The notes beneath the pieces are model-generated. The model did not search any database. It worked only from the letters and a program-made list of their open reading frames with translations, and was not told where the DNA came from. A stretch of 64,000 nt of DNA from Nageia nagi (lineage: Eukaryota; Plantae; Pinophyta), in contig JBITNC010000001.1 in assembly GCA_050084985.1 (NCBI GenBank), positions 27,032,001-27,096,000 of the forward strand. The letters run 5' to 3'. Positions 12,806 to 57,400 of the stretch are shown piece after piece; the stretch's first letter is position 1; every line of letters begins with the position of its first letter. Made by a program: the position numbers and the translations under genes.

Positions 12806-15800
12806 TGATTCAAATTGAATCATGTTAGGTTGTCTTTGTAGTAGCAGTACTCATTACAAAGGTATATGTTCTTGGAGATAGGCAAAAGACTAAAATCTAG
12901 AGTTGATTTGCATATAGAACCATGATACTAGGGGCATGTTATACTGTATTTAGGTCATTAATGTTGTGCATCTTGATGAATCAATAGGGGAAATTGAAGG
13001 GACATTGACACTTTGGGCAACTAAGCAATTTAGTGTCTTCAAGCAACATCTTGGAGATGATTCTAGGCTTATTTTAGGGGTATGCTCTTCTTTGATTCCA
13101 CAAAAAAAAGGGGGAGTTGTAAAGAGTTTTAGAATTTTGGGATTGTAAGAATTTGAAGGAATGCCAAGAGTCATTCTAAATTTTTTGTAGTTCTAAAATT
13201 GTTCTTCTTATTGTAGGAGATTATAGTAATTGTAAGAGATTGTATTGTCATTGTGTTGATGGTATTTCTCTATGCATGTAATATTGTAATGTCAATAGAC
13301 AATGAGAAGAGAAGGTTCCAATTCCATGTTATATTAGCCCATATTAGGTGAACCAAGATAAAATCATTGTATTTATCTTGTTGTGTATTTGAGATTGCTA
13401 GTTTGTAATTTTACATTATATAATTTTGAACTTATATGAAATTTGTATGATCTCATAATGGTGAATGTTTTTGCATTTGAATATGTAAGTGAGGATATGA
13501 GTATGCTATAAGAATCTGGTGATTATAGATCACATGGTATCAGAGCTTGTGTGTACAAAATTTAGGGCTAAAATTTTGGGGATTTCATGTTGCCAATGCA
13601 TGATTTTTTATGTTCGAGAGGAGATATCAAAGACTAGAGTTGATTCCATAGGATCCTGAGATTGGTCAAAGGAGAAAAGTGATAGAAATAGATAATGCAA
13701 AGGAGCAACATTCTATTGTTCATACCATGTTGGATGCCAATTTTGAAAGGAGATTTTCAGCAATGGAGAATCATTTAGCTTATTTGGCTAATTTGTTGGT
13801 TGCTAGAGAAAATGTAAATCTCAATCATGGATAACATGATGTAGTTGTAAGACCTGACTCATCATCTTCATCAAATTGAGTTTCATTCAAGGTGGAGGCT
13901 AAAGTGGACATTCCTACTTTTGAAGGAGAGGTTGATGCAAAAAAGTTGAACAGTTAGTTGAAACAATTGGAGATTTATTTCCAAATTCATGGTATTGTAA
14001 ATGATGTTGATAAAATCTCTTTTTCTAGATTAAGGATGAGTGGACATACTTTAGTTTGGTGGGAAATCCATGTAGAAACTATAAATCATGAACACTTATC
14101 AGAAATATCTTCTTGGAATGAATTTAAGGAGTTGTTAAGATATCAATTTTATCCATTAGGATATCATAATAAATAATTGATGAAATGGTAATTCTTTAGA
14201 CAACAAAGAGGGCAAATAGTTCAAGAGTACACTATCGAATTTAGGAACTAAGCTACTTTGCTTGGGGTTTCACTAAAATATCCTTAAACTTTAATGAAGT
14301 ACATTGGAGGTTTACATAGTCATTTGCAAAAGACTATCATGTTGTTTAATCATACTAATCTTGATCAAGTGTGTGTGAAAGTGCACTACTTAGAGGAGGA
14401 TGGTAAAGCAAGGAGATAATATCATGAGTCTAAGAAGGCTTCTAATTCAAGGGAGTATAGGAGAAAGGTAAATCTTACAATAAAAGAAAAGGTAAGCAAG
14501 AAACTAAGACCACAAATATTCAAAGAAAGAAGGTGATAGTAGACATTGTATGGTCATATTGATGATAACTGTTGGAAATTACATCTGGACTTACATCCAT
14601 ATAGGCATAAGAATAAGGATAAAACTAATGCTATGGTTCTTAGAAGTGAAGATATTGAGAGAATTTTAGATGTTGATGAGAGAATAATTGTTCAACCATT
14701 CAAAAGGTTGAAGAGCATCCATACATTGAAGAAAAAATGATTCAATTATCCCCTCTCAAAATCCAAATTAAGAAAACTAAAGTAAATTGCATTGTTGATC
14801 TGGGTTCTAAAGAAAATTTGATTTCAGAGACTATGGTAAGTAATATGGTATTAGAAACTCTCAATCATTCAAATCTCTATCCTTTTGGTTGGGTGCATCA
14901 CAATGCTAGTTTACAAGTCACTAAACAATGTAAGTTGAAATTTTCTATTTGTGCAAAGTACATTGATGAAGTTGTGGCTGATATTTTTCTTTTAGATATT
15001 TATGGTGTTATTATTGGTAAACCTTATGGGATAGAGATGGTATCTATTACAAAAGATTGAACAAATTATGATTGGTAAAAGATTGAAAGGTGTTTCTAGC
15101 TAGTGCACATAAAAGTAGGAAAAAAATATATTTGGTCACTTCCATTTAGGTAAAATGTCTTGTAAATGATTCTAAAAAGTTTGTTATGTTCATATATTGA
15201 AAATAAGAATCTCAAGTGAGGTGAATATCAAGCTATCAATGATGTGTAATATTGATTGTATGTCATTAGCGATATGCAATAGAGAGGAACATATGCAAAA
15301 TTATGTTTGGGAGTTTGTTGACTTATTTAGAGAGCTATAGGGATTACCTCCTATGCAAGATATACAACATGATATTCAGTTGCAACCTAATGCTTCATTA
15401 CTTAACATAGCTTTGTATCAAAAATCAATTTTGGAGTAAGAGGAGATAAAGAGACAAATTTAGGAGTTGGTTGATCAAGGTGTGATCAAACCAAGTCCAT
15501 CTCCATGTGGATCATCTATTATTTTGGTTCCCAAGAAAGATCAAACTTGGAGAATATGCATTGACTATAAAGCACCTAACAAAATCACCATAAAAATCGC
15601 TATCCTTTTCCTTGGATAGATGATCTTTTGGATCAGTTGCAAGGGGTAAGATTCTTCACAAAATTGGACTTGAGGAGTGGATATCACCAAGTTCGAATCA
15701 AGGAGAAGGACATTTGGAAGACTTATTTCAAGACAATACAAGGCCTATTTGAGTGGTTTATTTTTCCATTTGGTTTATTCAATGTATCAACCACATTTAT

Positions 15801-18800
15801 GAGGGTAATGAATGATGTACTTCATCCATTTATTGATTCTTTTGTTATTGTATACTTGTATGATATTATTATTTATAGTTATACTTGGAAAAAACATGTT
15901 GAACATCTTATACAAGTATTTCAATCTTCACATAGGGAAAATTTGTTGTTGAAACATTCCAAATATGAGTTTGGCAAAGAGTCTTTGGTGTATTTGGGCC
16001 ATGTTATTGGTCATGGCCAACTCAAGATAGATCCTAGTAAAAAATGTTATAGTAGATTGGCCAAGGACATCTAATGTAACTATAGTAAGAAGTTTCTTAA
16101 GTGCTATCTAATATTTGATAAAGTTTATTATTGATTTTTATCATGTTGCTTCACCTTTACATGATGTAACCAAAAAGAGAAAAGGTTTCCAATGGAGGAA
16201 ACAACAACAAACATCTTTTGATACTTTGAAATAAAAGATTATTAGTGCACATGTGCTAGCACTTCCTAGTTTGCAAAATTCTTTTTAAGTGGAGACTGAT
16301 GCAAGTGACTATGTCATGGAAGTCATTTTGTTACAAGAAGGTAAACCAATTTGCTATCATTCAGAAAAATTTAGAGGGTATATTTTGAATTATCCTACTT
16401 ATGATAAGGAAATGTATGCATTGGTTCAAGCTATTAAAAAGTAGGAACATTAATTAATGGGGAAAGAGAAAATAATTCATATTAATCATCAACCATTAAA
16501 GTATTTACAAACTCAATCAAAATTGCAACAAACTAGACATTATAGATGGATGGGTTTTTGTTAATAGCATGTAGTATTGATTATGGGCCATTAGCAATGT
16601 GCAAATAGGGTTCAGTGAGTTCTCTCTCATTGCTAAAATTTCTTCCTTTTCTTTTCAAGTCATTTTCAAAGGCATATGTGTAGGATCTTAACTTTGGAAA
16701 AGTGTATGAGCAAGTGTTTTCATATAGGTCAAAGTATGACGATTTGGATGATTTTCATTTGCAAAATAGACTTCTTTATCATTTTAATACATTATGTGTA
16801 CATATAGGTGAAAGGATTGGACTGATTAGAGAAGCACATACTTCAAAGATTGCAGGACATTTTGGGGTTGGAAACACATTGTACAATTTGCAAAGGTATG
16901 TATATTGGCCAAAAATGAAAGATCAAGTTGCCAAGTACATAAAGGGTATTCTTTGTGTTGCACCAGCAAGTCAAGTAATAAGAAATTGGATTTTTATTAC
17001 ACTTCCAGTACCTTCACATCCTTGGGAGAGTATTTCCATGGATTTTATGGGAGGATTTCCTATGAATAAAAAGGGTTATGACTATTTATTTATTGTTATG
17101 GATAGATTCAGCAAGATGTGTGTTTTGATTCCATGTAAGAATACTATAATAGGATAAGATGTTGCAAATTTATTCTTTTCTCATGTTTGGGTTCATTTTG
17201 GATTGCCTAATTCCATTGTTTCAAATAGAGATAGTATATTTTTGGGCAAGTTTTGGACATGTTTGTGGGAAAAGATGGATATAAGGTTGAAGAGGAGTAT
17301 TTCCTTTCATCCTCAAGTGGATGTACAAATTGGGGTGATGAATAGGATAGTGGTTCAACTCTTGAGGGGTTATTATGGCAAGCACCCTAAGTCTTGGGAT
17401 GAACATCTTGAATATATCCAACATTCATATAATAGGGAAATTCATTTGTCCATTAATAAGAGTCCTTTTGAGACTTGATTTGGTTATTTACCACCTTTAC
17501 CTTTTCATTGTATGTTTGAGAAGTAAAAGGATGAAGAAGATTCACTTGAAAAAGAGTGAAAGCAAGCTAAAAAATCTATTGAAAAGATTAGGCAAATTCA
17601 TTTGAAAGTCCAAGAACAACTTAAAACAAGCCAAGCCAAATACAAGATGCAACATGAAAAACATGGAGTTGACCATAAGTTTCATGTGGGAAACCATGTT
17701 TGGTTGCATATTAGTAAGGAGAGGTTACAAGGACATTTAAGAAGTTGAATCCTATAAGGTATGGACCATTTGAGATTATGGAGCAACTAAGTGAGAATGC
17801 TTTTAGATTGAATCTATCAGAATATATGAACATCTATTCAGTTATGAATGTTGAGCATTTGAAAATGCATGAGCTATCTATATTAACTAAAAAATGAAGT
17901 AGGTTTAGATCATATTTTGTCATCTATTGATGAATTAGCTCCTAATACTAAGGATAAACTCAAGGAGGATTCTATATTGCAAAATAAGGTCTGTACTACA
18001 AGAAGAGGTGAGATAGAGATGTGGTTGGTTGGATTGAAAGTACAAAGGCCTATAAAATCCAAGTGGATGGGCAAGTCTAGAGTTGGGGATTTGTATCCTC
18101 ATCTATGCATTTGTGAAACCAAATGCTTTACCATTGGGTAGGTGTGATACAAATTGGATCATGTCAGGTTGTCTTTGCAGGAGCACTACTCATTCTAGAG
18201 GTATATGTTCCTAGAGATAGGCTAAATACTAAAAACTAGAGTTGATTAGCATATAAAACCACATCAATAGCATCATGATATACTATATTCAATATGTTAA
18301 CAGCATGCACCTTGATGAGGTGATAGGGGAAATTGAAGGGACATTGACATTTTAGGTAGCTGAGTGATTTAGTATCTTCAATTGACATCTTGGAGATGAT
18401 TCCAAGCTTATTTAAGGGGCATGCTATTCTTTGATTCCACACAAAAAAAGGGGAATTATAGAGAGTTTTAGGATTTTGGGATTGTAATAATTTGAAGGAA
18501 CACCAAGAGTCATTCCAAAGTTTTTGTAGTTTCAAAATCATTCTTTTTGATGTAGGAGATTGTAGTAATTATAGGAGATTGTATTGCCATTGTGTTAATG
18601 GTATTTCTTTATGCATGCAATATTGTAATGTCCATAGATAATGAGAAGAGAAGGCTTTAATTCCATGTTGGATTAGCCCATATTGGATGAACCAAGGTAA
18701 AATTATTATGTTGATCTTGTTGTGTGTTTGAGATTGCTAGTTTGTAGTTTTAAATTGTGTAATTTTGAACTTATATGCAATTTGTATGATCTCATAATGG

Positions 18801-40687: not shown

Positions 40688-40921
40688 TGTATAACGACAT
40701 TAATTATACAAAGAAATTTAAAATAATATAAATTATTCAAATACATTTATAGTATAATAAATTAATGAATTTTATTTTTCTAAATGATTTATGCGTAAAT
40801 TTATTGTATAACGAGATTAATTATACAAAGAAATTTAAAATAATATAAATTATTCAAATAAATTTATAGTATAATAAATTAATGAATTTTATTTTTTCTA
40901 AATGATTTATGCGTGAATTCA
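40688..40921. repeat. 117-bp tandem duplication, near identical
   Basis: Copies start TGTATAACGA at 40688 and 40805, with only a few differences. Confidence 0.92.
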
Positions 40922-42799
40922 TTTAGAATTTTAGAATACTATTTTTAAAACTATTAAATATAGTCTTTGATGTGAAACCATTAAATGAAGATTATATATC
41001 AAGCTTTTACACTTTCATATTATTGAAACGAAAGTAGACACATACTTGGGTGTAATATTTACAGTACTTTTATCATTTAGAATACAAAGAAATAACTTTT
41101 CAAGATTGACCACCTGATTCCCCTTTGCTTACTATTTTAAAATTAAATTTTTTTTATTTTTATTTTTAATTGAGCTTTATTCTCAAGATACTCCCCCTTG
41201 AGGTTGAATGTCAATGTGTTCACTAATTGATTTTCATTACTATAGAACATTAAGTTACTTGCTTCTCACAATCATCTTCTTGATATAGCAATATCTTATC
41301 TCAACATGTTTAAGTGTAATTATGGATTCTTTATCAATTTCAATGTATTTATACTATAACTATGTATGATGGTTGTCCCTTCTTTCTTCTCTTGCAACTC
41401 TTAAAGGATTCTCCTCAATTGCCATGCTTAAGTTGTTGCTAATATTATCATTATATAGTTCACCTCTATTGTTGATAATGTTATAGCTAATTATTTCTTT
41501 GGAGTCCAATTTATGAGTACACTAAAAGAAAAATTATTTTCCATTATCAATCTCTAATCATCTAATGGATTAACATAATTTAAATAATAAGAATTAACAA
41601 GGCTAACAACCTCTGTTGAAGAATAATAGATGGCATAAATCCTTGTAACTTAAACATACATTGATATCATTTTCATGTGAATTTAAGAAGAAGGATCACT
41701 CATGAACCAAGCTAATGAGATACTGTAGACATTTAAAATTGATTAATTATTTATTAATAAATTATATTTTAAGTATCTAAGCTACATATTATTTAAATCA
41801 TGCAAATATATATAATATCAAGACTAATGTGCTAATTAAATGCTAAACATGTGCTAATCAAGGATAATATCTCTTAATCATATTTATATCTAAAATTATC
41901 TTGAAAATATCATTAATATTGCATGTTTTTTTATAATTCTATTGAAATGATTATTATTATTCCAAAGTTAGCTCTCACTCTCTCTTTTATCCTTATAAGT
42001 ATAAAAGGAGGTGCACAACATAATAACTCCTATCGGATATCTTTGATAGGTGGTTCATACTTCGGCTACTACACTTACAGTGTCTCTAGATGGCACCTAT
42101 CTGAGAATTTGTTATGCTCTGAGCTTTACATTACTTTTTATCTTTCTTATTTGATTTCATACTACGAATCTTAGGGCATTAAAAGAGTGAGAAGATTGTT
42201 GACATGATAGCCATGCCATGCTTCATTGCAATCCAAAGCTACATATTTGGAGGGCATTGAGGATTGATTTGGGTCATTCGAATATCCTCACGATAGGCGA
42301 GTGCAAGTTGGGTCCACTTAAGGTGGCACTTAAGGTGGACACTTCTTACTTGAAAAAAAATGGGCTAAAATGAAATTTTAGTTTTTAAAGATCGAAATTT
42401 CATTTTGGTTTCACATCTCGAACTAAAAATGAAATGAAATTTTGATCTTTAAAAACTAAACTTTTATTTTAGTTCAGAGTCTCAAACCAAAAATGAAATT
42501 TTGGTTTTTAAATATTGAAATTTCATTTCATAAAACTATAACCCTAACCAAAAAGCCCCATAGGCCCTCATTCTCTCCTCTCCAAAATAAGATTTCAAGT
42601 CTACGACGATGTGAGACTGTGCTATAGAATGAGATTTCATTTTTTAGTGCCCTAAATTCATTTTACAATGTCCTGCATCCTCCCTACAACCCTTTCCAGC
42701 TATCAAGGTACCTTGTTTCTTCCATGTCCATTTTTTTTGTAATAAAATAAAGAATTTGGTAAACTTTAGGGTTTGGGTTTATTTTTTATTATTTTTTCA

Positions 42800-45700
42800 A
42801 TATTACATGTTAGATGGATCACCTATAGCATCTTGGAATTGGATAATTTATAGGTATTGTAATGTAGATGTTGTAGAAGATGATTCTTGAGCTTTCTCTT
42901 TTTTTGCCTACTTTACAAAAAGTTTTATTTGTTTATGCCCAAGTCTATGTCCATATCAACTAAAGCTATCCCCTACCTACTCATATGAATTTTTAAATTG
43001 ATTATTTGCAATGTACACTATAATTAGACTATGAAAATCTTCCCTTTAAATGCTACCTTTACCTAGAGTATAATCAAATTACTCATTAGATTGCAAACCA
43101 AGAATCTCTTCCTTGCATTTTGGGTGATGAATTAAATGTTATAAGACATGTAGGAGAAATTGAATGAGGGATAAATAATATTAAACTATGTATAAATATA
43201 TAATTTAATGAATTCATAAACCATCTACATATAACATAAACCTTTTGTAAAAATGGGACCTTCACTTGGTCAAATAAAAAATATTTGATCAAATAATCTA
43301 AGAGAAAATTGAATGCTTTCTATTATCTACACACTAGATGGAAAATATGATTATCCTTTAGTTATAAGTTCTTCCATTTTGTGGGTCAAATAATTGGTTA
43401 GTGATTTTTTACTAGGAATAGCCTTCAAAACCTCAAACTTCTCCCTTTAGGTTCCAAAAACTATATTTATATCATTTTTGATAAATTGATCTTCACTAAA
43501 TAAAGGAAGTAATGATACCATAATGACCCCATGGAGAAGATCAAGATCCTAAAAAGAATGCAAAAACTATAATGTGTTATGCCATATATGAATATAAAGG
43601 GTGTTAAAAATGTAGTTGTTCAATAAATCCATTAATTTAAGGAATAAATGATGAAAAGAATAAGACGCATGTGAATATGGTAGAACTCATGGCCAATGAA
43701 GAAGATGTTTATGTCCTTGCAACTAAGTATGCCAAGGAGGAAGATCAAGAAATTAAAAAGATAAAAGAGGATAACAGAAGAAGAAGAAGAGGAGGAATAA
43801 GCACCAAATACTTTTCAGTCTCAAATGTGTAAGCATCCTACTTAATATTATAAGACTTATCTAAAAATCTTTCCAATATCATATATGGGTAATTATTGGT
43901 GTATATTCTAAAACAAGGAGCGTAGTACACAAAGGAAGAAGGGTGATTTCCCTTTATTAAAAGAAAAAAATGATCCATAGACTCATATCTCCTTTCCTAA
44001 TGTATTAGTAGATGTGGATGTAGTTATGAATATCATAACCATTTCCATCATGAATATGTTATGAATTAAGATTGACTGTGAGTCAAAACTATAGTTAAGG
44101 TCCTTAAAGAAAGGTAGAATAAAATATTGAGGATTTATTTTTTATGTATCCATTTTAATTGTTGGAGTTTCTTGGTTTGTACATTTATAAGTAATGAAGA
44201 ATCACTTATTAGCCTATCCCTTTAAGAAGGCCATGGTTAATGAGAGTCTATGCTTGCAACTAATAAAATTAAGGTTGTATGAATTCTTTATTGGATTGGT
44301 TAAAACATTTTGATTCCCCCAACCTCGATGGTATTCCCTGTTAGAATTTGTAATGTAATATTGTATAATATTTCTCTTTAATGTAAATTCACTTAATGCT
44401 TAAAGTATCTTTAGATACCCTCAAGCATTAAGGGAATAAAAATATAAAGAGGAATAAATTTAGAAAGAGAATTAAATATAGAAACACCTTTAACCTTATC
44501 CTTGGGTTAAAGGGAGGTTAAAGGGTCAGTTTCTTTTTATAAATAGAGAGGTACCTATCCTCTCATAGTAATGAAACTATTGTAAAGCTAGATTTAAGGT
44601 TTGGAGAGAGAGGAGAGATTATGTAAGAGAGGTCCTTGAGAATAAGAAGATCTTAGATAGTGAATGTACTCCAAACATAAGGCAACTTTTGAAATGATAA
44701 ACCTTGGTCTATTGCATTACTACCTTAGTATGCAAGTGTACCAATATTAGGATTGTACTTATCTTAATCAATCCAAGTATATCTCAAATATCTTACAAAA
44801 TTTTAGAGTGTAGGAGTGCAAGCATGCTGCAATTCTAGTCTCTCCTAGAATCATTATCTCTCTTAGTTCTAACTCTTAGTTGGTAGATGCTATAGCTTAT
44901 AGGTAACTTATTGGTAATATTCTTTATTTGACCATCTCCATGCCATATATTTCCTTCATTGTGAATTTGTTGGCTTGCTATATGCAAAAGCTATATGTTG
45001 AGCACCTCAATGTAGTTAAGCAAATTTTTAGATATGTTGCAAACACTAAGGATCTTTCTCTCAAGTATGCTAAGTTTTCTTCATTTGTTCTCCAATGATT
45101 CTTAGATTATGACTATGGAGGAGATTGAGATGACATAAAATCAACCTTTGCTTATTTGTTTAGCATTGGTTTAGGTGTTATCTCTTAGGCTTCTAAGACG
45201 AAGCCTACTATTGCTCTCTTTACCATAAAGGTTGAATATCATGCAATGTCACTTGTAGCACATGAAGCCATCTGGTTGAGGCATCTTCTAAAAGAAGTTA
45301 GGTATGAGCAGGTTCATCTATCTCAAGTTTCTTCAAATAATCAATCAATTATTGCTTTTGCAAAGAATCTTATTTTCCATTAGAGAATAAAGCATGTAGA
45401 AATCCAAGCCCACTTCATTAGAGAAAAGGTTCTGGATGATCTTCTACACTTATAGTATTGTCCATCGATCCTAAACTTTGTTGATTTATTCACCAAGCCC
45501 CTTCCTAAATCCCAGTTCTATAATCTTAGGGATTCTATTAGGTTGGTGAAGTTTCCTTTAAAAAGGGAGTAAATGTTGAATCCATTGTATCTACTTCCTT
45601 CTTAATAAAGTTACTAAACTTTTTATGGTTTGTATATTTTGTTTATACATTCCTTTATTTGGTGCTTATAAGTATGGGCTTGGCATATTTGTGATGAATT

Positions 45701-48700
45701 ATAGTTTACCACAAATCCAAGCATATTATATCAAGGAGAAATTCCTTGATGAAACAATTGTAGCTCTATTCATTTGACTTTACCTCTCTTGATTTATTCA
45801 CTAGATCGCTTTAGAAATTTTGTTATGTGCACTTTGAAAGTTTCTTGTGGTTTGTGAAGTTATCCTCAAGGTGGAGTGAAGTTTGAATTCTTTGAATTCA
45901 TGTTTGTGATGATAAATTCATCCTTAGGAGGATATTTTGTTATATAGTGTTGATCTAAATGTACACCTTCATGGTTAGTTCACTCAATGTGAGGAACTCA
46001 TGGTACATTTTTTTGTTTTTGTTATCACTATGTAAGGAATTAGTATATGTTTGTTGGCATTATTTGGTTATCCAGATGTGAATAATTGATATATGAATAT
46101 GCTACTTTTAATTAATTGATCAACATATATTTCTAATATATAGCAAATGACTATAAGTATTAGCTTGGCATCTTTGTGATGACGTATAGTGCATCATCTA
46201 ACTGATCTTATTTATGAGCATCTTGTAGCTTATAGGTTTTATCTTGAGAATTCAGGTTACTTACTTTGACTCATGGAGGTTCACATGTCAACTCAATGTT
46301 TATTGACTACACCTTACAGTGAAATTAGTTATGGTTAATGATTGTATTGTAAACCATTTTCTCAAAATGGTATTATAGTGAGTCTTAAAATAAGATCTTG
46401 CTAATTTTTCAATGATGTGAAAGTCCTCATCTTTGCTTGTATCTCTTTGGAGGAGAACTCTCTCTCTTCTTTCTCTACGCTCTATCCCAATATTACATAA
46501 TTGAGAGTGTTAGAATTTGTAATGTAATATTGTATAATATTTCTCTTTAATGCAAATTCACTTAATGCTTAAAGTATCTTTAGACACCTTAAAGCATTAA
46601 GGGAACAAAAATAGAAAGAGGAATAAATTTAGAAAGAGGATTAAATATAGAAACACCTTTAACCTTACCCTTGGGTTAAAGGGTGGGTTTCTTCTTATAA
46701 ATAAAGAGGTACCCCTCCTCTCATAGTAATGAAATAATTGTAAAGCTAGATTTAGTGTTTGGAGAGAGAGAATAGATTATGTAAGAGAGGTACTTTAGAA
46801 TAAGATCTTAGTTAGTGGATGTACTCCCAAAAAATGAAGAACCACTTTATATCTTATTTTCATTGTGATATTGGCTTATGTTATTGAGTTATTATGTTGA
46901 TGTTGTAAGTGCCTTCTTGAGATCTTGGTAAACTAGAGATTAATTTGGAAAGGGTTAATTTCATCATTCCCCTAGTCTTATTTTTAATATTATTATTAAT
47001 TTCATCCTTTTCTAGTCTTGTAAATGAAGAAGCTAAGGGTTTCTTCCAAAGCTCTTGAGATTTCCCCTTACCTTTTCATTATCCTCACTAAATCCCTAAT
47101 CAGAGAATTAACCAAGTCTAAACACAAAATAAAATTTAAGTGTATTTTGGTTAATAGGAGTTTCCCAACTATCACTTATTCCTAGTTTACTAATGAAATG
47201 GGATTTTAGCAATTACCCTTTCTCTTCAAGATATTAATCATTGCAAGAGTATTCTTCATATATATGAACAAGCATCAGGGTATGAAATCAATAGAATGAA
47301 ATCCATAGTTTTGAACTTAATATACATATGTTGATGCATATAATATTTTGATTCAAATATCTCTCTTGATCAAAGATACTACAAATACCCCAACTTCCTA
47401 TAGTTATATGTGGAACAAACTCCTTTAGATCCCAAAGGAAAGAGAGGCATTTTGATGCCATGGGATTTTAGATACACCACTTTTTCCATAGGACTTATTT
47501 TTCTTTCCTTCAAGTCTCTATTTCCTTTACTAATATTTTAGTCTCCTAAAGGAAGATAAGTTAAAAAATTTATTGGCCTAAATCATAGTTTAGGGAGAAA
47601 CAATCAATATTCTTGAAACTATAAATATTCATTTGGAAAAACTTTTATAGGTCCTAGGATTCTATGTTTTCCCTTGCATCACCATGCTTAATTTTGAGAT
47701 AATGTTTCCATCTTAAATTATATTTACTTACCTACATTGTTTCTTAATGAATTTATATACACATACCCTTAGTTTATATTTGGTAAATAGTTTATCATTT
47801 TCTTAAAATATTAGCTTGATTTAAGATAATTTTTTATAATTATTTTATTACCAAATATAAGTTAAATTATTATTTAGTTATTGTAATTTATGTAAATTTA
47901 TTCTTATAATTGTTAATGTGTGTAGGTGACCTTTTGTTTTCATGGATCTGCCACCTCCATCTCCTCCACATCATGAAAACCCCCAACCTCCACCCCATAG
48001 TCCACCTCATGTAAACCCCCACCTCCAGCCCCTCAATCAAATGAGGCTCACCTTAAAGCAACTATTAATGAAAATATCAATCTCTTACATGATAAAATAA
48101 GTGAATTCTATACTCCTAGTAGGGATCTCTCCCCCCCCCCCCCCCACATGTAATAGTTTGTATCTATGATGTAGACCATAGTTGATACAATTAGGTCCTT
48201 GGATTAGGGTATTGATCATTACCATACATCAAGAGAGGAGACAAGATGGTTTTATGTACATGGTCCTCTTATAAGGAGATTAATGACCTAAAAAATATAA
48301 AATAAATAATATTTGTGTATTTCATTGATTCTAAAATTGGGCAACCAATCATACCTAGCAAACAATTAATTAGTATTAGGTGGTATACCCATCTAGAGAT
48401 AGCCCATCATTTTTGGGATCGATGATGTATGGTATTCAATTAGGATCCACATGGAAAAGGGTACGATATCCTATTGTATTTTTTTTTTAAATGCATGCAG
48501 ATTTTGTATTGCATAGAAAACCCAATTACTTTGATATAATACCATCTCAAGGTATTGGTCTTGGTTGTCCACAAGATAGGCCAGGGGCATGGGTCAATCC
48601 AAATTGACCTACATGTGTTCCACCTATAGTCCCTTCTACTGGTTCTATTGTTCCTACTATTGTTCTTAATTTTATAGTATTTTTAGTGTTAAAGATGTTG

Positions 48701-49790
48701 AGTAAGCTATTAGACACTCTCATTAAACAAGCTACCAATGTGGTAGCTGAGTTCAATGAGCAACATCGTGGAGGATATGATGGATTAGGATATAGTAGCT
48801 CATATATGATGATGCCTCATATGTGCCAACATTGCCACTAGATATATTTTGGGCCCACTCTAGGTGTAGCTATAATAAATTGTGATAAGATTGCTATGCA
48901 GATTCTACTTGTTGGTAATCCTCCTAATACACAAGTAATTAAGTGTGTTTAATATACACATATTTTATATTTAATAAGAATTTTATACAATTAATTTTAA
49001 TTTTTAATATATTTATATTTTTTGGCACAAAGGATGGGCTCTACATCATCAGGTGGATATGATTGAGATTATATTATATCCACTCAAAGACAACATCAGA
49101 CACCTTACAAGATTATCAAATTTACCAAGTTTAAATTGTAGTATTGTATTTTACTTTTGTATGTGTGCACATGTTCATAATATTTTTGTTATTACAAGGA
49201 GTTCATGGGACATTCATGTTCGACCACTCAAAGGGTATGTTGAGTACTCCTTCGATGTCTACTATTTAGGATCTATCACCCATTATATGTATTTTTACAA
49301 ATTAAGTAATAAAATTATACTTTTATTTTTCACTATATATATTTGCAAGTTGATACCATCATTATGATGGGTCTCAATCCCTAGGTTACTCATGAGAAAC
49401 AATTTCACCCTCAGTCATCTTCAGTATTTTAGGTAATTTTTTAAATTAATTTATTTGATTCTTTATTTGATCTACATAAATAATTTCAATTTATGTTTGT
49501 GCTTTATTTGATCTTAAGGATATAGTTTATCAGACCTTTGATGCTGATATAATAGGTACACCATAGGTATATTAGGATTCAATGGAGATGAACATCATGA
49601 TGTGGTAATATATCCTTTTTTGTAGTGTGTACATATAGATTAAATAATTTAAATTAATGATTAAATCAAATTTAAATTTGATTTTACATTTCTTTATCTT
49701 GAACAACATGAGTCTACAGTTTCACCTTCATCACGTGGACCTAAAAGGAAGATTGATTAGGATATAGGTGGATCTAGTTAGATAGGTTGA
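42800..49790 (+). pseudogene. Putative multi-exon accessory gene(s) of the DNA transposon, convergent with the transposase; function unknown
   Basis: Exon-like blocks separated by very AT-rich GT..AG introns. The main exon 47926-~48934 has a Pro-rich start, then RWYTHLEIAHHFWDR*CMVFN*DPHGKGYDILLYF..MHADFVLHRKPNYFD. Several mini-exons lie at 49030-49790. An upstream coding-like block at 42815-43800 has an E/K/R-rich end. Confidence 0.45.
44339..46966 (+). mobile_element. Internally deleted Ty1/Copia element nested in the DNA transposon
   Basis: LTR copies start TGTTAGAATTTGTAATG at 44339 and 46508; the 3' LTR ends TCATCA at 46966. TSD TTCCC (44334-44338 / 46967-46971). The 5' LTR is truncated at ~44675 and fused to RT-end/RNase H (IKHVEIQAHFIREKV, DLFTKPL) at 44680-45570. 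Confidence 0.9.
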
Positions 49791-49877
49791 ATAAGATATT
49801 GCATTTTTGATGACTTAAATATTTTTGTACATGGAATTTGTATTTTTTGATATATATGTATGCATGTAATATCTTGT

Positions 49878-49956
49878 ACTATGGACATTCTTATGGACTA
49901 TGTTATTATGGACATTATTTTGGACTATGGACATTCTTATGGACTAAGTTATTATG
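49878..49956. repeat. Short nested tandem repeat (TATGGAC-based)
   Basis: ACTATGGACATTCTTATGGACTA occurs twice, with additional TATGGAC units. Confidence 0.8.
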
Positions 49957-50550
49957 TATTTTTTGACATATGCATGTTGATGATATTTTTTGGTGGATGT
50001 CGATAAGTTAGACATGTTTTTATGATGTTGTTATGTTGTTATATTGTTATGTTATGAATTAGATGTTGTATCATATTTTTGGAGGTCACAAAATGTATGT
50101 TGTACAAAATTTGTAATTATTATTGGAAACTTTTATCTCTTTTAGTTTTAAATGGTTTTGTTAATTGAATTTTATGTCAATGACATTATGGGACAATTGC
50201 AAATAAGTCATCTAGCTTTAGACGATGATAATTACTTACAAATTGCATCTAAGATTCACTTGTTCTAAAATATATTGATAACACTTAACACTTACTTAAG
50301 TAATGAAATTAAACACATCTTACAATTAATAACAAATATGTAAATATGTATCTAGATAATTCTTATAAAAATCTCCATTAAACTATATTCAAATAAAGCA
50401 ATCCATAATTTATTCTTATTAACTTTTATAAAAGATATTACAAATATGGCTACTAGAGTTTTGTGTTGTCTTACAACAAATGTTAAATTACTTAAGCTAC
50501 TAATATAGAGTTTCATTATAAAATATGTTAATATTACAAAAATTGGCCTC

Positions 50551-50762
50551 TTTTTTCAATGTTGGGTGATCATATTCTCTTTTATACCATCCTTGACATC
50601 TCCCCTAATGTTTCATGGGGTTAATTAAGATAACTTCAAGTTGCTAATACATACTTTCATTAAAATTATATTAATCTTGCAAACTTATGCCTAACTTTTT
50701 CAATTTTAGGTGATCATATTCTCTTTTGCTACCATTCACAATATCTCCCTATTATTACATGT
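50551..50762. repeat. Diverged ~65-bp direct repeat in the transposon interior
   Basis: TTTTTCAAT..GGTGATCATATTCTCTTTT..TACCAT..ATCTCCC occurs twice, ~144 bp apart. Confidence 0.7.
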
Positions 50763-51014
50763 ATATGATTGCTTTAATCAAAGAACCAAAAGGATTATGA
50801 TGAATTCTATATTTAAGATTACTCAATGATTTTAAAATTTTGGTATTTTTATATTTTAGGATTGAACTTCATGTACATTCAATGATACAAAAAGGTTGAT
50901 CAGTCTTGACTATAATCATTTAATTTATAATGTATTAGGTAAGATATAACATTATCAACATATATATGGAAGATAAATGTAAAGTCCATGTTGAAAAATA
51001 TAATATGAAAGGTA

Positions 51015-51087
51015 TGTTGTCTATGGGAATCAAACCCATAACCATGTGGTTAAAATCCATACACTCTACCAACTGAGTTAAGAAAAT
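51015..51087 (-). pseudogene. tRNA-Lys(UUU) pseudogene, full length (73 nt), CpG-decayed
   Basis: The minus strand reads ATTTTCTTAACTCAGTTGGTAGAGTGTATGGATTTTAACCACATGGTTATGGGTTTGATTCCCATAGACAACA. This is colinear without gaps with plant cytosolic tRNA-Lys(UUU) as recalled (GCCGTCTTAGCTCAG.TGGTAGAGCG..TGGCTTTTAACCA..TGGTCGTGGGTTCGATTCCCACAGACGGCG). Most differences are C>T/G>A; the acceptor stem is damaged. Confidence 0.88.
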
Positions 51088-51260
51088 TAAGGGTTAGGGG
51101 TTAGGTATTAAGGGAGGGAGAGGGGAGAAGGGGAGTGGAAGCATATTAGGGACTAGGGGTTAGGTATTAAAAATTAGGGGTTAAGTGTTAGGGATTAGGG
51201 TAGGGGGATAATGGGAGGGGAAGGGGATTGGTGATTATCAATTAGGGGTTAGGGATTATC
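51088..51260 (+). repeat. Degenerate telomere-like (TTAGGG/TTAGGGG) G-rich tract
   Basis: Repeated TTAGGG(G), GGGTTAGG and GGGA runs in an otherwise very AT-rich context. Confidence 0.8.
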
Positions 51261-51336
51261 CATTTTCAAACTAAGATACAAATTTCACATAACTAAATGA
51301 ATAAGAATATTAATTTATAAACTTACCTATATTTTT

Positions 51337-54300
51337 TCAATTTGTTGTACCATCTGCATCCTCATTTTTTTGCAATGCATCCATAATAAGCTTATGTTCC
51401 TCCATAAAAATACTCCATAACACTTTATTATTAGGTATTCCTTTAAATCTATCAAGTTTTATATTTGTTTTCAGTACCAAATATGAGTAGTATATAATCT
51501 TCTTATGTATTTCATAATCTTCATATGCAAGCAATCCATTCTTTCTTTTGAGATATATTCGTAGCCATGTACCAAAAACCACCACAAAACTTGTTGAATA
51601 CTCAAATCCATCATCATAAAATTAAGTATGAGTTAATTTATATTTTTTTTCAACACATCTTAGTAACCAATACTTTGTTCCCTCTTCATTCCCCTTAGGT
51701 GCCACAACAGCATACACATATCTTGCAACCAAAATTTGTATCAATAAAGTATGATATATAAAACTAACATATATACATAATTATGCTTTCATATAAATAT
51801 ATTGAATTAAATATTTTAATTTAAAATGAATTAAATTACCTTCTTTTACAAGGTCCAAAATACGATCATAGTCATCTATCATAAATAATTGATTCTCATA
51901 TTCAATTCCTATTTCATGTTGATCATGTGATTACATAGGTGTCAAATATCTTTGCTTCCATTCCTTGAGCCATTATTTATTTGTACATGCTTTCCAATCA
52001 CTTGCAATACAAAACTAACAAAAACACACAAGCTCTCTTGTTCATATAGTCCATGTTCTTGCATTTGAACTCCTAAATGAATGCCACTTTGTTGATCCAC
52101 TAATTATCTCACAATCATGATGAATTAGAATATTATATTACTCAATTAACCAAAATAATAATCAACTTATATAATTATCACTTGATCCTGTAGATAATTT
52201 TGTATTACACCAATCCATAATTTCATGTGCATCTTTAAATTTGGTTGCATCTTCAAATTTCAATTTCTCTCTAGCAAGAGCTCTTTTAATGCATGCACCA
52301 ACTCCATCATGTTCTTCTTTACCATGTACAACTTCAAAAAGACTCCACATATATTGGATATTATTCTCTTTGTGAACCCTACTTAGCTAATAAAACATAT
52401 ATTCATTTTTAAATTATTCTGTACAATTATCTAACCAAAGTAAATGTTATGCTATTTGAATTTTTCTTTCCTTCAAATTATTGTAAAATAGCTTGAAGCA
52501 ATATTGGATAAACTTTGATGACTGTAATCGATTGTCACTCATGTTGAAATGATACTCCCTCAAATTTTTCTTATTATCTTTTGTACTATCATCTACATGT
52601 CTATATATAATATGAACAAAAATGAAAACTTGCATTGAATTATAATATTGAGATTGGATTTCTTATTGTGATGTAAGAGTATAGTTTTCTGCAAAGCAAC
52701 CACTGATAATATAGTTTCAATTGAAAATGTGTTTCTAAATAAATGAAATTCCCTATCAAGTCACTAAGCATGTTGGGAGTGTTTCACATATTTGGGTAGT
52801 ATCTTAATCTTAAAATAATCCATAAATGTATGCACATTAATATTTTTAATGATCAAATCAACATATTTTCTATTTTTTCCATCCTTCAAAGCATACTTAA
52901 TTTCTTGAATTTTTTAACATCTACTAATTGTTGTCCAAATTCATGTTCATTAATTTCATGTATACATCCTCCTAACAATGAAAAGTTACCACAACTATTA
53001 CATTGTCCAAAAATACATGCTTTTAAATAAAATAATTGCTCATTAAGAGTTTCACAAAATAAAGTCACTAATATTTTCAAAAGGTGTATTAGTAATACCA
53101 CATTCATGCATCAAATTATTAGTATGAAAAGTACAATGAATTCCAAAAATATCATAATAATATCCAAATTGTATATGAGTCTTACAACATACTCTATGTT
53201 TATTAATTTTCATTTACAAAGGTTTGCATTTTTCAAATGATCTTTAACTAATATTAAATGGTAAAAATGATTCACTTGAAATTTTTATATAAATTTTAGT
53301 TTTAATCATATATAATAGGTGTTTAACATGAGGATCATGATTTTTTTATCCTACTCTTAGTTTCAAAACATCTCTAGTATTAGATGAAACCCTAGTATTA
53401 TCATACCAAAAAATTCCAATTAAAGATTTATTTTTGTTATTCAATTTCATGTCAGACCATGGGAGTCTACCACTAAAACTCCAACATTGTTTTATTGGAT
53501 AAATTTCAATACTTTGTATTCTCTTTGTAGCTCTATGCAAATTTTTATGATTTATGTTTAGAAATCCATTAACCTTATAAATGATTTTTTTTTAGTTGAA
53601 GTTGTTTTACTAACTAAAGTTGTTGTTATAGCTTGACATGTCATATTATTATCTTTAGATAGACTCCTCTTCCCTATAGAGTCAATGACACTAGCAATAA
53701 TGGATATAACATATTTAAGGTGTTCATATTTCTTCACACAAACACCTAAAGTTTTCTCTCCTTTTCTCATTTTTTGCATTCTCATTAATTGCAATAAGAT
53801 TTGATATTGAAAACTTAATGTTTGCTTAGAGAAAAATTGATCATATACTATATTTGCATATCTTCTTATTTGTCTCCAAGATTTCTTACCAGGGATATTA
53901 TCTAATCTATTGCTTTCAATTAAAAAAAATACCATCAAAAGAATTATTAAAACTAGGGTTTTTAATATTATTTACTATTTATATTTCTTCATGATTAGAA
54001 TTAATATCATCTACATTATCAAAACGTGGGTTGAAAGACATATCTATATTTGTTTCAATATTCACATTTCACATGTAATTCAAAAACGGATCTAAAGCCA
54101 TACTTGAATTTGTATCTATAGTCATCAAAATTGAAGCCTCATTAACTTGTGGATTTGAAGATGTACTTGGATTTGAAGCTTCATTCAATGTTGGACTTAA
54201 AGAGGTACTTAGATTGGAAACTTCTATCATATCAAGATGTTCCATAATTGCATCATCTATGTTCATCTCTTCAATTACATTCTCTTGATTGTTCTCCTCC

Positions 54301-54455
54301 TTAATTGCAATTGAACTTGATTCTTTAATCCTTGCATATCTATCTCTTTTTCTTTCTACCTTCTCTTTCTTCGCTTGAATTTCTTCATGTGTCATAGTCC
54401 TCCTTGCTCTCTTTGTCTGATGATGTTTTGAACCATTGATTATCAAAATTATCAA
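51337..54455 (-). pseudogene. Sola-like DDD transposase with at least one intron, disrupted
   Basis: Triad contexts V(D)FAENY at ~52681-52700 (1-nt deletion), WLDNCTE*FKN at ~52405-52437 and HGKEEHDGVGACIKRAL in ORF 52162-52350. Cys clusters CIFGQCNSCG and LVCFC..C. Intron donor at 51839, last exon ~51720-51337. Confidence 0.8.
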
Positions 54456-57400
54456 AGCAAACTTAAAAAACTCTCTTTGCTCAAGAATTTCTTCTGAAAG
54501 TGATAGTTTATTTCTTGTGAAAATCCTTCTTTTACCATCTAATATTCTTATTTCACAAAAATATTGTAATAGTTACCACCTTTGACAAGAGATTAAAAAA
54601 TGGAGTACAAAGAGATTCTTCTCAATAATTCTACATTAGAAAAATGTAGGAACATCACTTTCAAAGCTTAGTATGATGTAAAGTATAGACAAGATGATGT
54701 AGAGTTCAGAAAAAGTACTATCCAAAGTACTATTGTTAGTAATGGGTACATAAGGAACAAAATTTTATTTTAAAATGAAATTTCATTCTTTTTTAATGTT
54801 AAAAAAAAATAATAAAAATTTGTTTTGAACCTAAATTTTGTTATTTGAATTTAGGTTTGGGTTTAGCCTTGGAAAAGGCTTGGTGGGCCAAGTCTTAGCC
54901 TTGGACCTACAACTTCTTGTTCATGGCAATGGGAGTGAAACATTGTGATTTCTAATGGATGTTTGATCAAGTTTTCTGAGGAGTTTTTTTACGAAATTAA
55001 AATCCGTTTCAGATCAAAGAGTATAGATTACAAATATGTAATTTTTTTACAATTAGATTATATTTTCTATTTTTAAATTATTTTTCAATGAAATTAGTTC
55101 TTAAACTTGAAAAATTAGGTTCTATTACCTTTTTAATAACTTTTTTTGGGGGGAATTATGAAAAATAATTAGTGTGTAATGTATAGATAATTATCTATTA
55201 TATAATTTTTTTTTGAAAAAAGGATAATTTTAGGTCAAATTATGTGTGTTGTAGATTGGTACTTTTTGAAATAATAATTAGGGCCAGTAAAAAATGAATT
55301 AAAAAAATATTCATGAAAATTTTATGAAAAAATATCCTGACCAATCTTTAGTGTGTCTGGTATCTTTTTCCAAAAGGATTTTAAGAAATATTATATTTTA
55401 AGTCAAATTATGCTTCTCTTAGATGTGCACGGTATGGTCCTAAAATAGTACATTTTAAATAGTGGCTTTTAGAAGAGTCTATCATAAATCAACTTCTATC
55501 AACTGGGTATTGGAATAAATTACATTTTTGAAAACTACACTCCAAGCACTACATTTTCACCCTAGTGATAGTTTTCAAGCTTCCATTTCTAAGGGCTTCG
55601 AAAGTTGAGATCAATTATGAACAAACCTGAAAATCAAGGAAAACATGCCCACTTTTTGCCCATTTCGTAGATCCAACTTCTGGTACTGACCCTATTCTTA
55701 AGTGTCTCTAAGATATCAAAAGACTTGATAATTATTATTCTTAGATTTCTAAGGAGATTATTTATGTTAGGTTGATGTGGTTTTTTGGTGGAAATTACTA
55801 AATCTCTAGCTTATTTATTTGTAGTAATCAATACCTCATTATTATTATGATTATTCCAATAAAGTTATTATGAAATGGTAGGTTATTAATAAGGTTTTAT
55901 TCCATTTTGTTAACTTATGAGAATAGAGGTATTAAACGTTTTTTTTTCAAATGTAATTTTTTTAGTTTCTTTTCTTATCTACACATAGTTATCTATAAAA
56001 TATCATTTATTAGGGTTTAAAAATCATGAATAGAATTAGGAGGTAGTTTGTAAAACTATCCAAGACACATTTTTCTAGGTTGTGAGGGAAGACTTTGGGT
56101 TACACTATTTCATCATTAATGAATGTTGTACAAGATATTTATAAAGGGAAAATGTGAAGAGTGGGATCTTCCTTCCCATTGGAGATGAAAATTTAGGGAT
56201 GTTAAGTCTAAAAAGGGGATATGAGGGTGCACTATATTACGGACCAGGGGATTATTCATTATGATAACATAATTAATTGATGTCTTATTATGGTGAAAGA
56301 AACATTTTAAAACTTTTATTGTAGCTAATTATTTAATCTTAATATACTTATATGATGAAATGAATTATATTCAAGATAACATTGAACCAAGAGGTGATAG
56401 GTTCAAAAGCCATAATAACATTTGTAGAAAATATAATAATATACTTATCTAATTATTATATATTTTTTTGAGTAGTTTAAGGTTGACTTGCAAATGAATT
56501 TGAATTATTATATAGTTTTAAAAGGTTAAAAAATATAAAATAAAGTTGGTAGTGGATAATAATTGGCTAGTATGGAGATTGTGTGACCTAAAATCCGTTA
56601 ACCATTTATTGATTTTATATAAATTAAGAACAAGAGAGAAGGCATTTATTTAATGATGTAAATGTTTTGACTTTGACTTTGATAGTTGATTATTGATTTA
56701 TGTTTGGGCATCATTTGATCTACATCTTTAAGTTTTCAACAAAGAGATCGAATTTGAGAGGCACCTCAAATTTGGTGGATGGTTTGTGGAATTTATCTTA
56801 ACAATTATAATCCTTGATAAGTGAATGAATTTTGAGTTCATTATCTAGGGAATTGAAATGGAATTACATTAATAAAAGTTTGACATCATATGATACCAAT
56901 AAGGGATGTTTTAGGTACTTTCAAAAATATCATGGTAGCTATATGAGAATTATAACTATCTTTAGGTATTATTTTAAAGATTTCATAGCTACATGCAAAA
57001 TGATGTGGTAATTTGGATAATATATAACATGGTGGTTGTGATATTTATGATTGATCAATAAGAAAAAAATTAATAATCTATATACATTTTATACTTGGTA
57101 TGAGGTCAAAGGTATGCATTAGGTATATTAACAAACTAACAAAAATGATAAATTGATGAAAATGAAAAGAAAAACTCTATAATATGAAATCTTGATCATT
57201 TCTTCTTATATTTTATATTTAAATGAAATATTTTTTAAATTAACACTCTTCTAAAAAATCAATCCCTAACAAAATAATAAAAAACAGTTATTACAAAAAT
57301 TCATAATATTAAATAAAAAATTCTTTAATTAATTATTATAAATTCATGTACAGGTCAACTGAAAACACTTCAGAAAGCCCATTAATTAAAACCACATTTT

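Follow-up and report, generated by a model that had tools for sequence, protein, structure and literature searches.

A possibly Sola-like plant DNA transposon family with an inherited tRNA-like and telomere-like tail module in Nageia nagi

Elements of the Sola superfamily (Sola1-3; Bao et al. 2009, as reviewed in PMC10741241) encode three-aspartate (DDD) transposases and produce 4-bp target-site duplications (TSDs). Their size starts at 2 kb and can exceed 15 kb, and flowering plants seldom contain them (PMC10741241). Their transposases have no Pfam model (PMC5751038), and across 1007 plant genomes Ginger and Sola together accounted for only 9 of 3203 active clusters (PMC12973397). We analyzed a stretch of 64,000 nt from Nageia nagi (assembly GCA_050084985.1, contig JBITNC010000001.1, positions 27,032,001-27,096,000 of the forward strand), hereafter the window. 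Positions 50992-55692 of the window are probably a long-inactive, decayed member of a DNA transposon family that is very abundant in the plant lineage, presumably of the cut-and-paste type, with a hitchhiking tail module composed of a tRNA-like cloverleaf and a telomere-like tract. A preliminary description of this DNA had proposed a giant two-gene Sola-like transposon spanning 42323-55708; this architecture was an over-reading and is corrected here. The superfamily type itself is already known; what the locus adds is a Sola-like plant family whose tRNA-like/telomere-like tail module is inherited. We know of no description of such a tail module for Sola.

An affinity of this family with Sola is plausible. 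The family presents a DDD triad on an RNase H-like core, a feature that is not unique to Sola, and it shares with Sola a transposase without a Pfam model and, apparently, a large and variable element size and short, variable terminal inverted repeats (TIRs). Its terminus begins with GGG, which would fit the GRG given in the preliminary description for Sola2 ends. Like Sola, the family is rare in flowering plants, and its relatives are found in molluscs, insects and green algae. In contrast to Sola, the family has no demonstrated 4-bp TSD, and it is likened to Sola by these features and not by the sequences of Sola1/2/3.

Copies of the family were collected from two sources. Logan contigs from four runs (X1, X2, X3 and X6, representing the same or a close genome) were placed on positions 50300-56200 of the window, and a protein-pattern scan of metagenome contigs yielded 80 loci, of which L001-L013 and L040 are copies recognizable at the DNA level. 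Once redundancy among these loci was accounted for (L008 equals L009, L012 equals L013, L005 equals L007 and L001 nearly equals L002), 11 independent metagenome copies were left. All of them are decayed, and they present 68-86% DNA identity to the window. Between 5,800 and 20,000 Logan contigs per run were found on 51.3-55.7 kb, 539 of them at ≥99% identity in the case of X1. The summed Logan depth was in the thousands from ~51285 to the bin 55619-55815 and then fell to ~20. The deepest bin, with a depth of up to 73,646, was 55422-55618 in the subterminal part of the 5' arm, and this peak suggests the existence of many non-autonomous derivatives or solo ends.

Read on the minus strand, the family unit starts with the terminus 5'-GGGT(C/A)AGTAC.AGAAGTTGGGTCCAC and continues with an arm of ~1.1 kb containing palindromic GAAATTTC motifs, which are presumed to be transposase-binding sites. 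Next comes a Pfam-less DDD transposase gene, whose product has a Cys-rich N-terminus and an RNase H/integrase fold, and the unit ends, ~20-60 nt past the stop codon, with a C-rich telomere-like tract and then a tRNA-Lys(UUU)-like cloverleaf of the same sense. In the window, the 5' arm and right terminus occupy 54573-55692 of the minus strand (5'-GGGTCAGTACCAGAAGTTGGATCTAC...), as delimited by a three-copy alignment, an nhmmer profile of the arm and Logan depth. The alignment of the window with L012 and L040 extends to position 55692 (minus strand 5'-GGGTCAGTACCAGAAGTTGG...), similarity is wholly gone beyond it, and the upstream flanks of the three copies are unrelated to each other. Since the three-copy similarity stops at 55692, the right end proposed in the preliminary description lies 16 bp outside the element. 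The terminal bases are GGGT at the right end, identical to the consensus of the Logan loose ends, AGGT in L012, GGAT in L040 and AGGC at a second, family-type terminus on the left that is discussed below.

The pieces of the transposase gene lie on the minus strand from ~54.57 to 51.35 kb. The N-terminal remnants (52889-54572) are pieces of open reading frames (ORFs) with DNA-level homology to L006, L012, L040 and others, and they include a Cys-rich C..G.C..CG piece whose motif agrees with the consensus of A3, an alignment of 40 relative proteins. The catalytic core and the C-terminal half (51346-52719) form a pseudogene with ~ten in-frame stops and the motifs CFAENY, WLDNC and HGKEEHDGVG. When in-frame stops were read as X, window positions 52719-51346 matched positions 195-612 of the family profile A3 in a single frame (hmmsearch, E = 7.6e-90). 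Three residues of A3, D212 (DFAENY), D303 (SDGC) and D345 (HGK..DG), are invariant or nearly so, and its N-terminus is Cys-rich. The window copy has replaced the first catalytic Asp and kept the second and the third.

A single 74-residue piece of the transposase (52165-52386) yielded 95 relatives among 1.84 billion representatives. One of the relatives, P0059, aligned colinearly to 52695-51364 (tblastn), and its homologues were found in Klebsormidium nitens, the conifer Cryptomeria japonica, bivalves, a snail and insects, none of them with a Pfam domain. Another relative, P0133 (XP_057867281, 505 aa), is annotated as an ordinary 'uncharacterized protein' in the genome of Cryptomeria japonica. 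Pfam searches with 18 ORF pieces and 20 relatives identified no family. The sole named links are a faint Pfam match to DUF7869 in one distant Drosophila relative (E = 0.019) and DUF7869-containing Atlas neighbours; our literature search retrieved no paper that mentions 'DUF7869', a sequence search of the PDB with the family profile returned no match, and NCBI names gave no family.

An AlphaFold model of the family transposase reached a predicted local distance difference test score of 86.8. Residues 193-397 of the model resembled retroviral integrase cores, the Mos1 mariner transposase and IstA with Z-scores of 8.8-10.8. Foldseek alone returned weak matches to RNase H folds, and the usable Z-scores come from a second structural comparison (VIA). 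The three Asp are placed in the model at the end of strand 1, at the end of strand 4 and at the start of the following helix, which are the sites expected for a DDE/D triad. Considering the profile match with its ~ten stops, the replaced first Asp and the triad and fold of the family, the window contains a dead DDD transposase gene with a predicted RNase H/integrase fold and no Pfam family. The minus-strand transposase of the preliminary description is therefore confirmed, but as a pseudogene.

In one group of more distant homologues (L036:500-3263, L041:690-3390, L042 and L048), homology forms a single block that runs from an AG acceptor-like start to the stop codon. This coding-only conservation possibly reflects a domesticated or exon-structured relative. 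No termini were found in the distant homologue groups, in which homology is limited to the coding block. In another set of long metagenome contigs, direct repeats of ~750 bp that are 85% identical and ~10 kb apart (L072:3454-4210 and 13434-14189, also in L073, L076 and L077) flank a distant transposase homologue on both sides.

The family core continues past the end of the transposase gene. All copies share the same ORF end (...GATGCAGATGGTAC....TGA), and in eight of nine independent copies it is followed after ~20-60 nt by a C-rich tract composed of CCCTAAT, CCCTAAA or CCCCTT units. In the window, this tract is located at 51088-51258; on the plus strand it reads as a degenerate, G-rich telomere-like sequence of TTAGGG/ATTAGGG and GGGGA-type units. 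Of the 22 plus-strand TTAGGG motifs in the 64-kb window, 7 fall within this tract, which is 44% G with 17 runs of at least three G and no more than 3 C. This confirms the TTAGGG-like tract reported previously. Next, on the minus strand and in the same sense as the transposase, lies a tRNA-Lys(UUU)-like cloverleaf (51015-51087; Rfam RF00005, 48.4 bits, model positions 1-71). The last ~20 nt common to the copies (50992-51014, minus strand) are A/T-rich, include a T-run downstream of the tRNA-like sequence and constitute the left limit of the family core, since homology to L040, L008/L009, L006 and L007 stops at 50992-51006 (blastn). Logan depth was low in the bin of the G-rich tract and high in the tRNA bin.

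A tRNA-like sequence of the same sense was found after the tract in the window, in L006 (two units), in L008/L009 (two units) and in L040. The carriers of this tail module represent two sublineages that are 76-79% identical, and the divergence of the tRNA-like sequences (72-80%) parallels that of the element. In L007 the tRNA-like sequence is inverted and located at the contig end, and the contigs of L004 and L010 stop within the tract. We did not find the tRNA-like sequence in L001/L002 or in L003, and the 36 distant loci, 243 kb in total, yielded no tRNA-like match. Since the tRNA-like sequence and the tract occupy the same place with the same orientation in four independent copies (including the window) of two sublineages, they constitute a family feature, and our observations support that they are an inherited, organized part of the transposon lineage. 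The earlier claim of an organized family, as opposed to accidental capture, is thus upheld for these two components; it is not supported for the two-gene architecture, whose left half and accessory gene are not shared.

The preliminary description had named a tRNA gene in the form of a full tRNA-Lys(UUU) copy. The sequence does form a full-length tRNA-like cloverleaf, but it does not qualify as a genuine tRNA gene: ARAGORN called no tRNA gene at 51015-51087, and the Rfam alignment revealed two mismatches in the acceptor stem and one in the anticodon stem, which together indicate that this is not a functional tRNA-Lys gene. The A/T-rich acceptor stem of the window copy is unusual and is common to seven tRNA-like sequences; across these seven, 85% of cells are paired (72% in the acceptor helix) and covariation is not significant. 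Nuclear tRNA-Lys(UUU) genes and the heads of tRNA-derived short interspersed elements (SINEs) resemble the family sequence by the full cloverleaf, the anticodon loop CUUUUAA/AUUUUAA, the A-box-like and B-box-like segments (TAGCTCAATTGG, GGTTCGATTCC) and, in the window copy, the downstream T-run. The family sequence differs from tRNA-Lys genes by its acceptor stem and its rejection by ARAGORN, and it differs from SINEs in that it lacks a SINE body or tail and that the repeat tract is upstream, not downstream.

The module was inherited by at least two sublineages and behaves in a minisatellite-like manner, with 1-3 units, a variable tract length, one inversion and an absence from two lineages. 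The module would represent a captured tRNA gene and G-rich repeat that hitchhike with the element and not a working tRNA gene; a captured hitchhiker is favored over an essential part because unit number varies, one unit is inverted and two lineages lack it. In L006:3997-4520 and L008:4187-4850, the tract (CCCTAAT) and the tRNA-like unit form a tandem array of two to three repeats, each ~240-300 bp long, and a transposon-borne minisatellite may be forming there. L001:2370-2749 and L002:2566-2945 originate from separate samples; they share 99.7% identity as far as the transposase end and diverge inside the C-rich tract, with canonical CCCTAAA runs in both further on. This split could correspond to two young copies or to an assembly fork in low-complexity sequence.

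Comparable associations have been described in other transposons. As in the acquisitions of CACTA and MULE/Pack-MULE-type elements, a non-transposase sequence is inherited within the lineage and tandemly amplified with a variable number of units, and internal regions differ between copies that keep their ends. Those elements, however, belong to other transposase superfamilies, and the captured unit here is a whole tRNA-like cloverleaf with a G-rich telomere-like tract directly behind the stop codon. Dada transposons, according to Kojima and Jurka in 2013, are reportedly linked to small-RNA genes (tRNA, U1 and U6) by their choice of target. They too are DNA transposons physically tied to tRNA-type sequences, but, comparing by description only, the RNA gene of Dada is the flanking insertion target, whereas the present family carries its tRNA-like sequence within the conserved unit and has upstream flanks that are unrelated in three copies. 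A literature search identified no paper tying telomere-like repeats, a DNA transposon and a tRNA together in such a way.

It is unlikely, although conceivable, that the G-quadruplex-prone tract and the cloverleaf behind the stop codon are a functional module of the transposon lineage. If so, they could form an RNA polymerase III (Pol III) unit for a small regulatory RNA, they could mark the 3' end of the transposase transcript through cleavage by RNase P/Z, or the G-rich tract could stall gap-repair synthesis and thereby generate a copy-specific interior behind it.

The DNA to the left of the tail module presents a different picture. In L006, L008, L040 and L001, the sequence that extends 1.8-3.1 kb past the last tRNA-like unit showed no similarity to 42.2-51.0 kb of the window, and these extensions are mutually unrelated (blastn and tblastx). 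A TIR scan of the loci found no family terminus in them. Logan depth peaks near 50833, and positions 50914-50993 are covered by only 5-8 contigs, compared to 40-90 at sampled places of the core. Two tandem units of ~140 bp at 50483-50761 are a separate, moderately repeated sequence outside the family core. The 8.7-kb interval left of the cloverleaf is not a component of the family; it contains AT-rich DNA without recognizable genes, the ~140-bp repeat and a truncated long terminal repeat (LTR) retrotransposon.

This nested, internally deleted retrotransposon (44339-46830, plus strand) had been recognized previously, and its pair of LTRs (44339-44675 and 46508-46830, both beginning with TGTTAGAATTTG) was confirmed with 88.7% identity over 337 nt. 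Its pol remnants have no Pfam match, so that its tentative assignment to the Copia type relies on reverse transcriptase (RT)-tail and RNase H-like motifs read by eye. Further right, a convergent multi-exon gene had been proposed at 47.9-49.8 kb. We found only short ORF pieces on the plus strand at 47926-49790, with no Pfam match, no homologue and low Atlas recognition, and neither tblastx nor blastn produced a match to the 80 related loci. The accessory gene is consequently not supported.

A family-type terminal repeat is nevertheless present on the left, at 42295-42339 of the plus strand (5'-AGGCGAGTGCAAGTTGGGTCCACTT...), followed by a near-palindromic tandem repeat of 12-13 bp (TRF 42315-42344). 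Self-matches aside, nothing else in the window resembles the termini of L040, L012 and the right end as closely, and its score of 20 exceeds the maximum of 18 among 20 shuffled windows; its sequence AGTGCAAG...TTGGGTCCACTT compares with AGTGCAAGAAGTTGGGTCCACTT at the L040 terminus. With up to two mismatches, the 15-mer core of the terminus occurs in the window only at this left end and at 55667-55681, and the left terminus is inverted relative to the right end. The adjacent subterminal region (42368-42650) contains 64-bp repeats with the palindromic motif ATGAAATTTCAT. With up to one mismatch, the window has just three occurrences of this motif, at 42515, at 42629 and, within the right arm, at 54775; the 5' arms of L012 and L006 carry it as well. 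Further comparisons were negative: no clean long TIR emerged from local alignment of both arms or from a noisy short-word blast, the nhmmer profile of the 5' arm did not find a second arm, and a TIR pattern scan of genome and viral contigs returned only chance matches in bacterial and viral contigs.

How the two termini belong together can be weighed against the original proposal of one organized element of 13.4 kb (42323-55708), bounded by 12-bp TIRs and a TAAG duplication, with a transposase, an accessory gene, a tRNA gene and a G-rich tract as its standard cargo. The inverted family-type termini do bracket nearly the same span, coming within 28 bp of the proposed left end and 16 bp of the proposed right end, and the tRNA-like sequence and the tract are indeed family features. 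The proposed ends, however, do not coincide with the family boundaries, and TAAG lies outside the family termini. The TIR arms (42323-42334 and 55697-55708, 10/12 matches) exist, but when left ends were sought in 41.5-43.5 kb and right ends in 54.6-57.0 kb (2.0 x 2.4 kb), nine pairs of the same quality were found against a mean of 8.5 in shuffled sequences; such pairs are thus at chance level, and the TIR/TSD by itself is therefore without weight. In addition, few Logan contigs span the junction on the left side of the cloverleaf, and the accessory gene has neither homologue nor family. Homology among copies ends at 50992-51006 and at 55692, other than at the proposed positions, and the left part (42.3-51.0 kb) is present in none of the four independent copies that reach beyond the tail. 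These two results mostly refute the two-gene architecture, and we consider a single organized element of this kind very unlikely.

The presence of a second, inverted family-type terminus with its subterminal motif at 42295-42650 leaves two ways to read the 13.4-kb span, with about even support: either it is a single old copy whose interior is specific to that copy, or two fragments of the family happen to be neighbours. In the second case, a 3'-truncated autonomous copy (50992-55692) would stand near an unrelated solo end or non-autonomous remnant (42295-42650), with ordinary intergenic or transposable-element DNA between them; taken on its own, we give this scenario somewhat less than an even chance. 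It accounts for the lack of a target duplication (CGAT against TATT) and for an interior that other copies do not share. Solo ends should also be common, because the terminal sequences far outnumber the transposase in Logan depth. Against this, an old 4-bp duplication can vanish by mutation, and the left end has no other partner terminus in the 64-kb window. In the other copies, too, no terminus appears in the 1.8-3.1 kb downstream of the tail module, and members of the family may therefore be truly long. A further alternative concerns the tail itself, whose tRNA-like sequences could be independent insertions of tRNA-derived SINEs or tRNA gene conversions drawn to the G-rich tract. The variable copy number and orientation, the copies without a tRNA-like sequence and the very deep tRNA bin would fit this scenario. 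The tRNA-like sequences are, however, found in the same position and sense between homologous flanks (the tract upstream and ~20 nt downstream) in four independent copies of two sublineages, their divergence follows that of the element, they share the unusual acceptor stem, and they are absent from 243 kb of distant relatives. Independent insertion is accordingly most improbable.

Some points weigh against our interpretation of 50992-55692 as an old family copy with a hitchhiking tail. The metagenome loci come from plants other than the source of the window, and low-complexity tracts can give rise to chimeric metagenome contigs. L012/L013, the nearest copies to the window at 85%, end before the tail, and for this reason the window may belong to a subfamily of its own in which a long interior is conserved. 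No duplication is seen in the flanks of 42295 and 55692, and the search recovered no copy that retains both ends, so that the pairing of TIRs, the length of the element and the length of the TSD are not fixed. Finally, the view of the tail as a hitchhiker draws on its variability and on non-significant covariation in only seven sequences.

Read by eye, the rest of the window is filled with retrotransposon ORFs with gypsy-like RT/integrase motifs and gag-like pieces (14680-17154, 351-845 and 5593-6412), and no host gene was seen there when ORFs were read. Directly left of the element region, at 40688-40925, lies a 117-bp tandem repeat with two copies that are 96-98% identical.

Once the giant architecture is set aside, a modestly unusual observation remains: a very abundant plant lineage of DDD transposons without a Pfam model has kept and multiplied a tRNA-like/G-rich tail across sublineages. 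With the alignment, predicted fold and termini of this family, annotators can recognize a superfamily that escapes the usual domain scans. Such a family could spread interstitial telomere-like repeats and tRNA-like Pol III units through a large plant genome.

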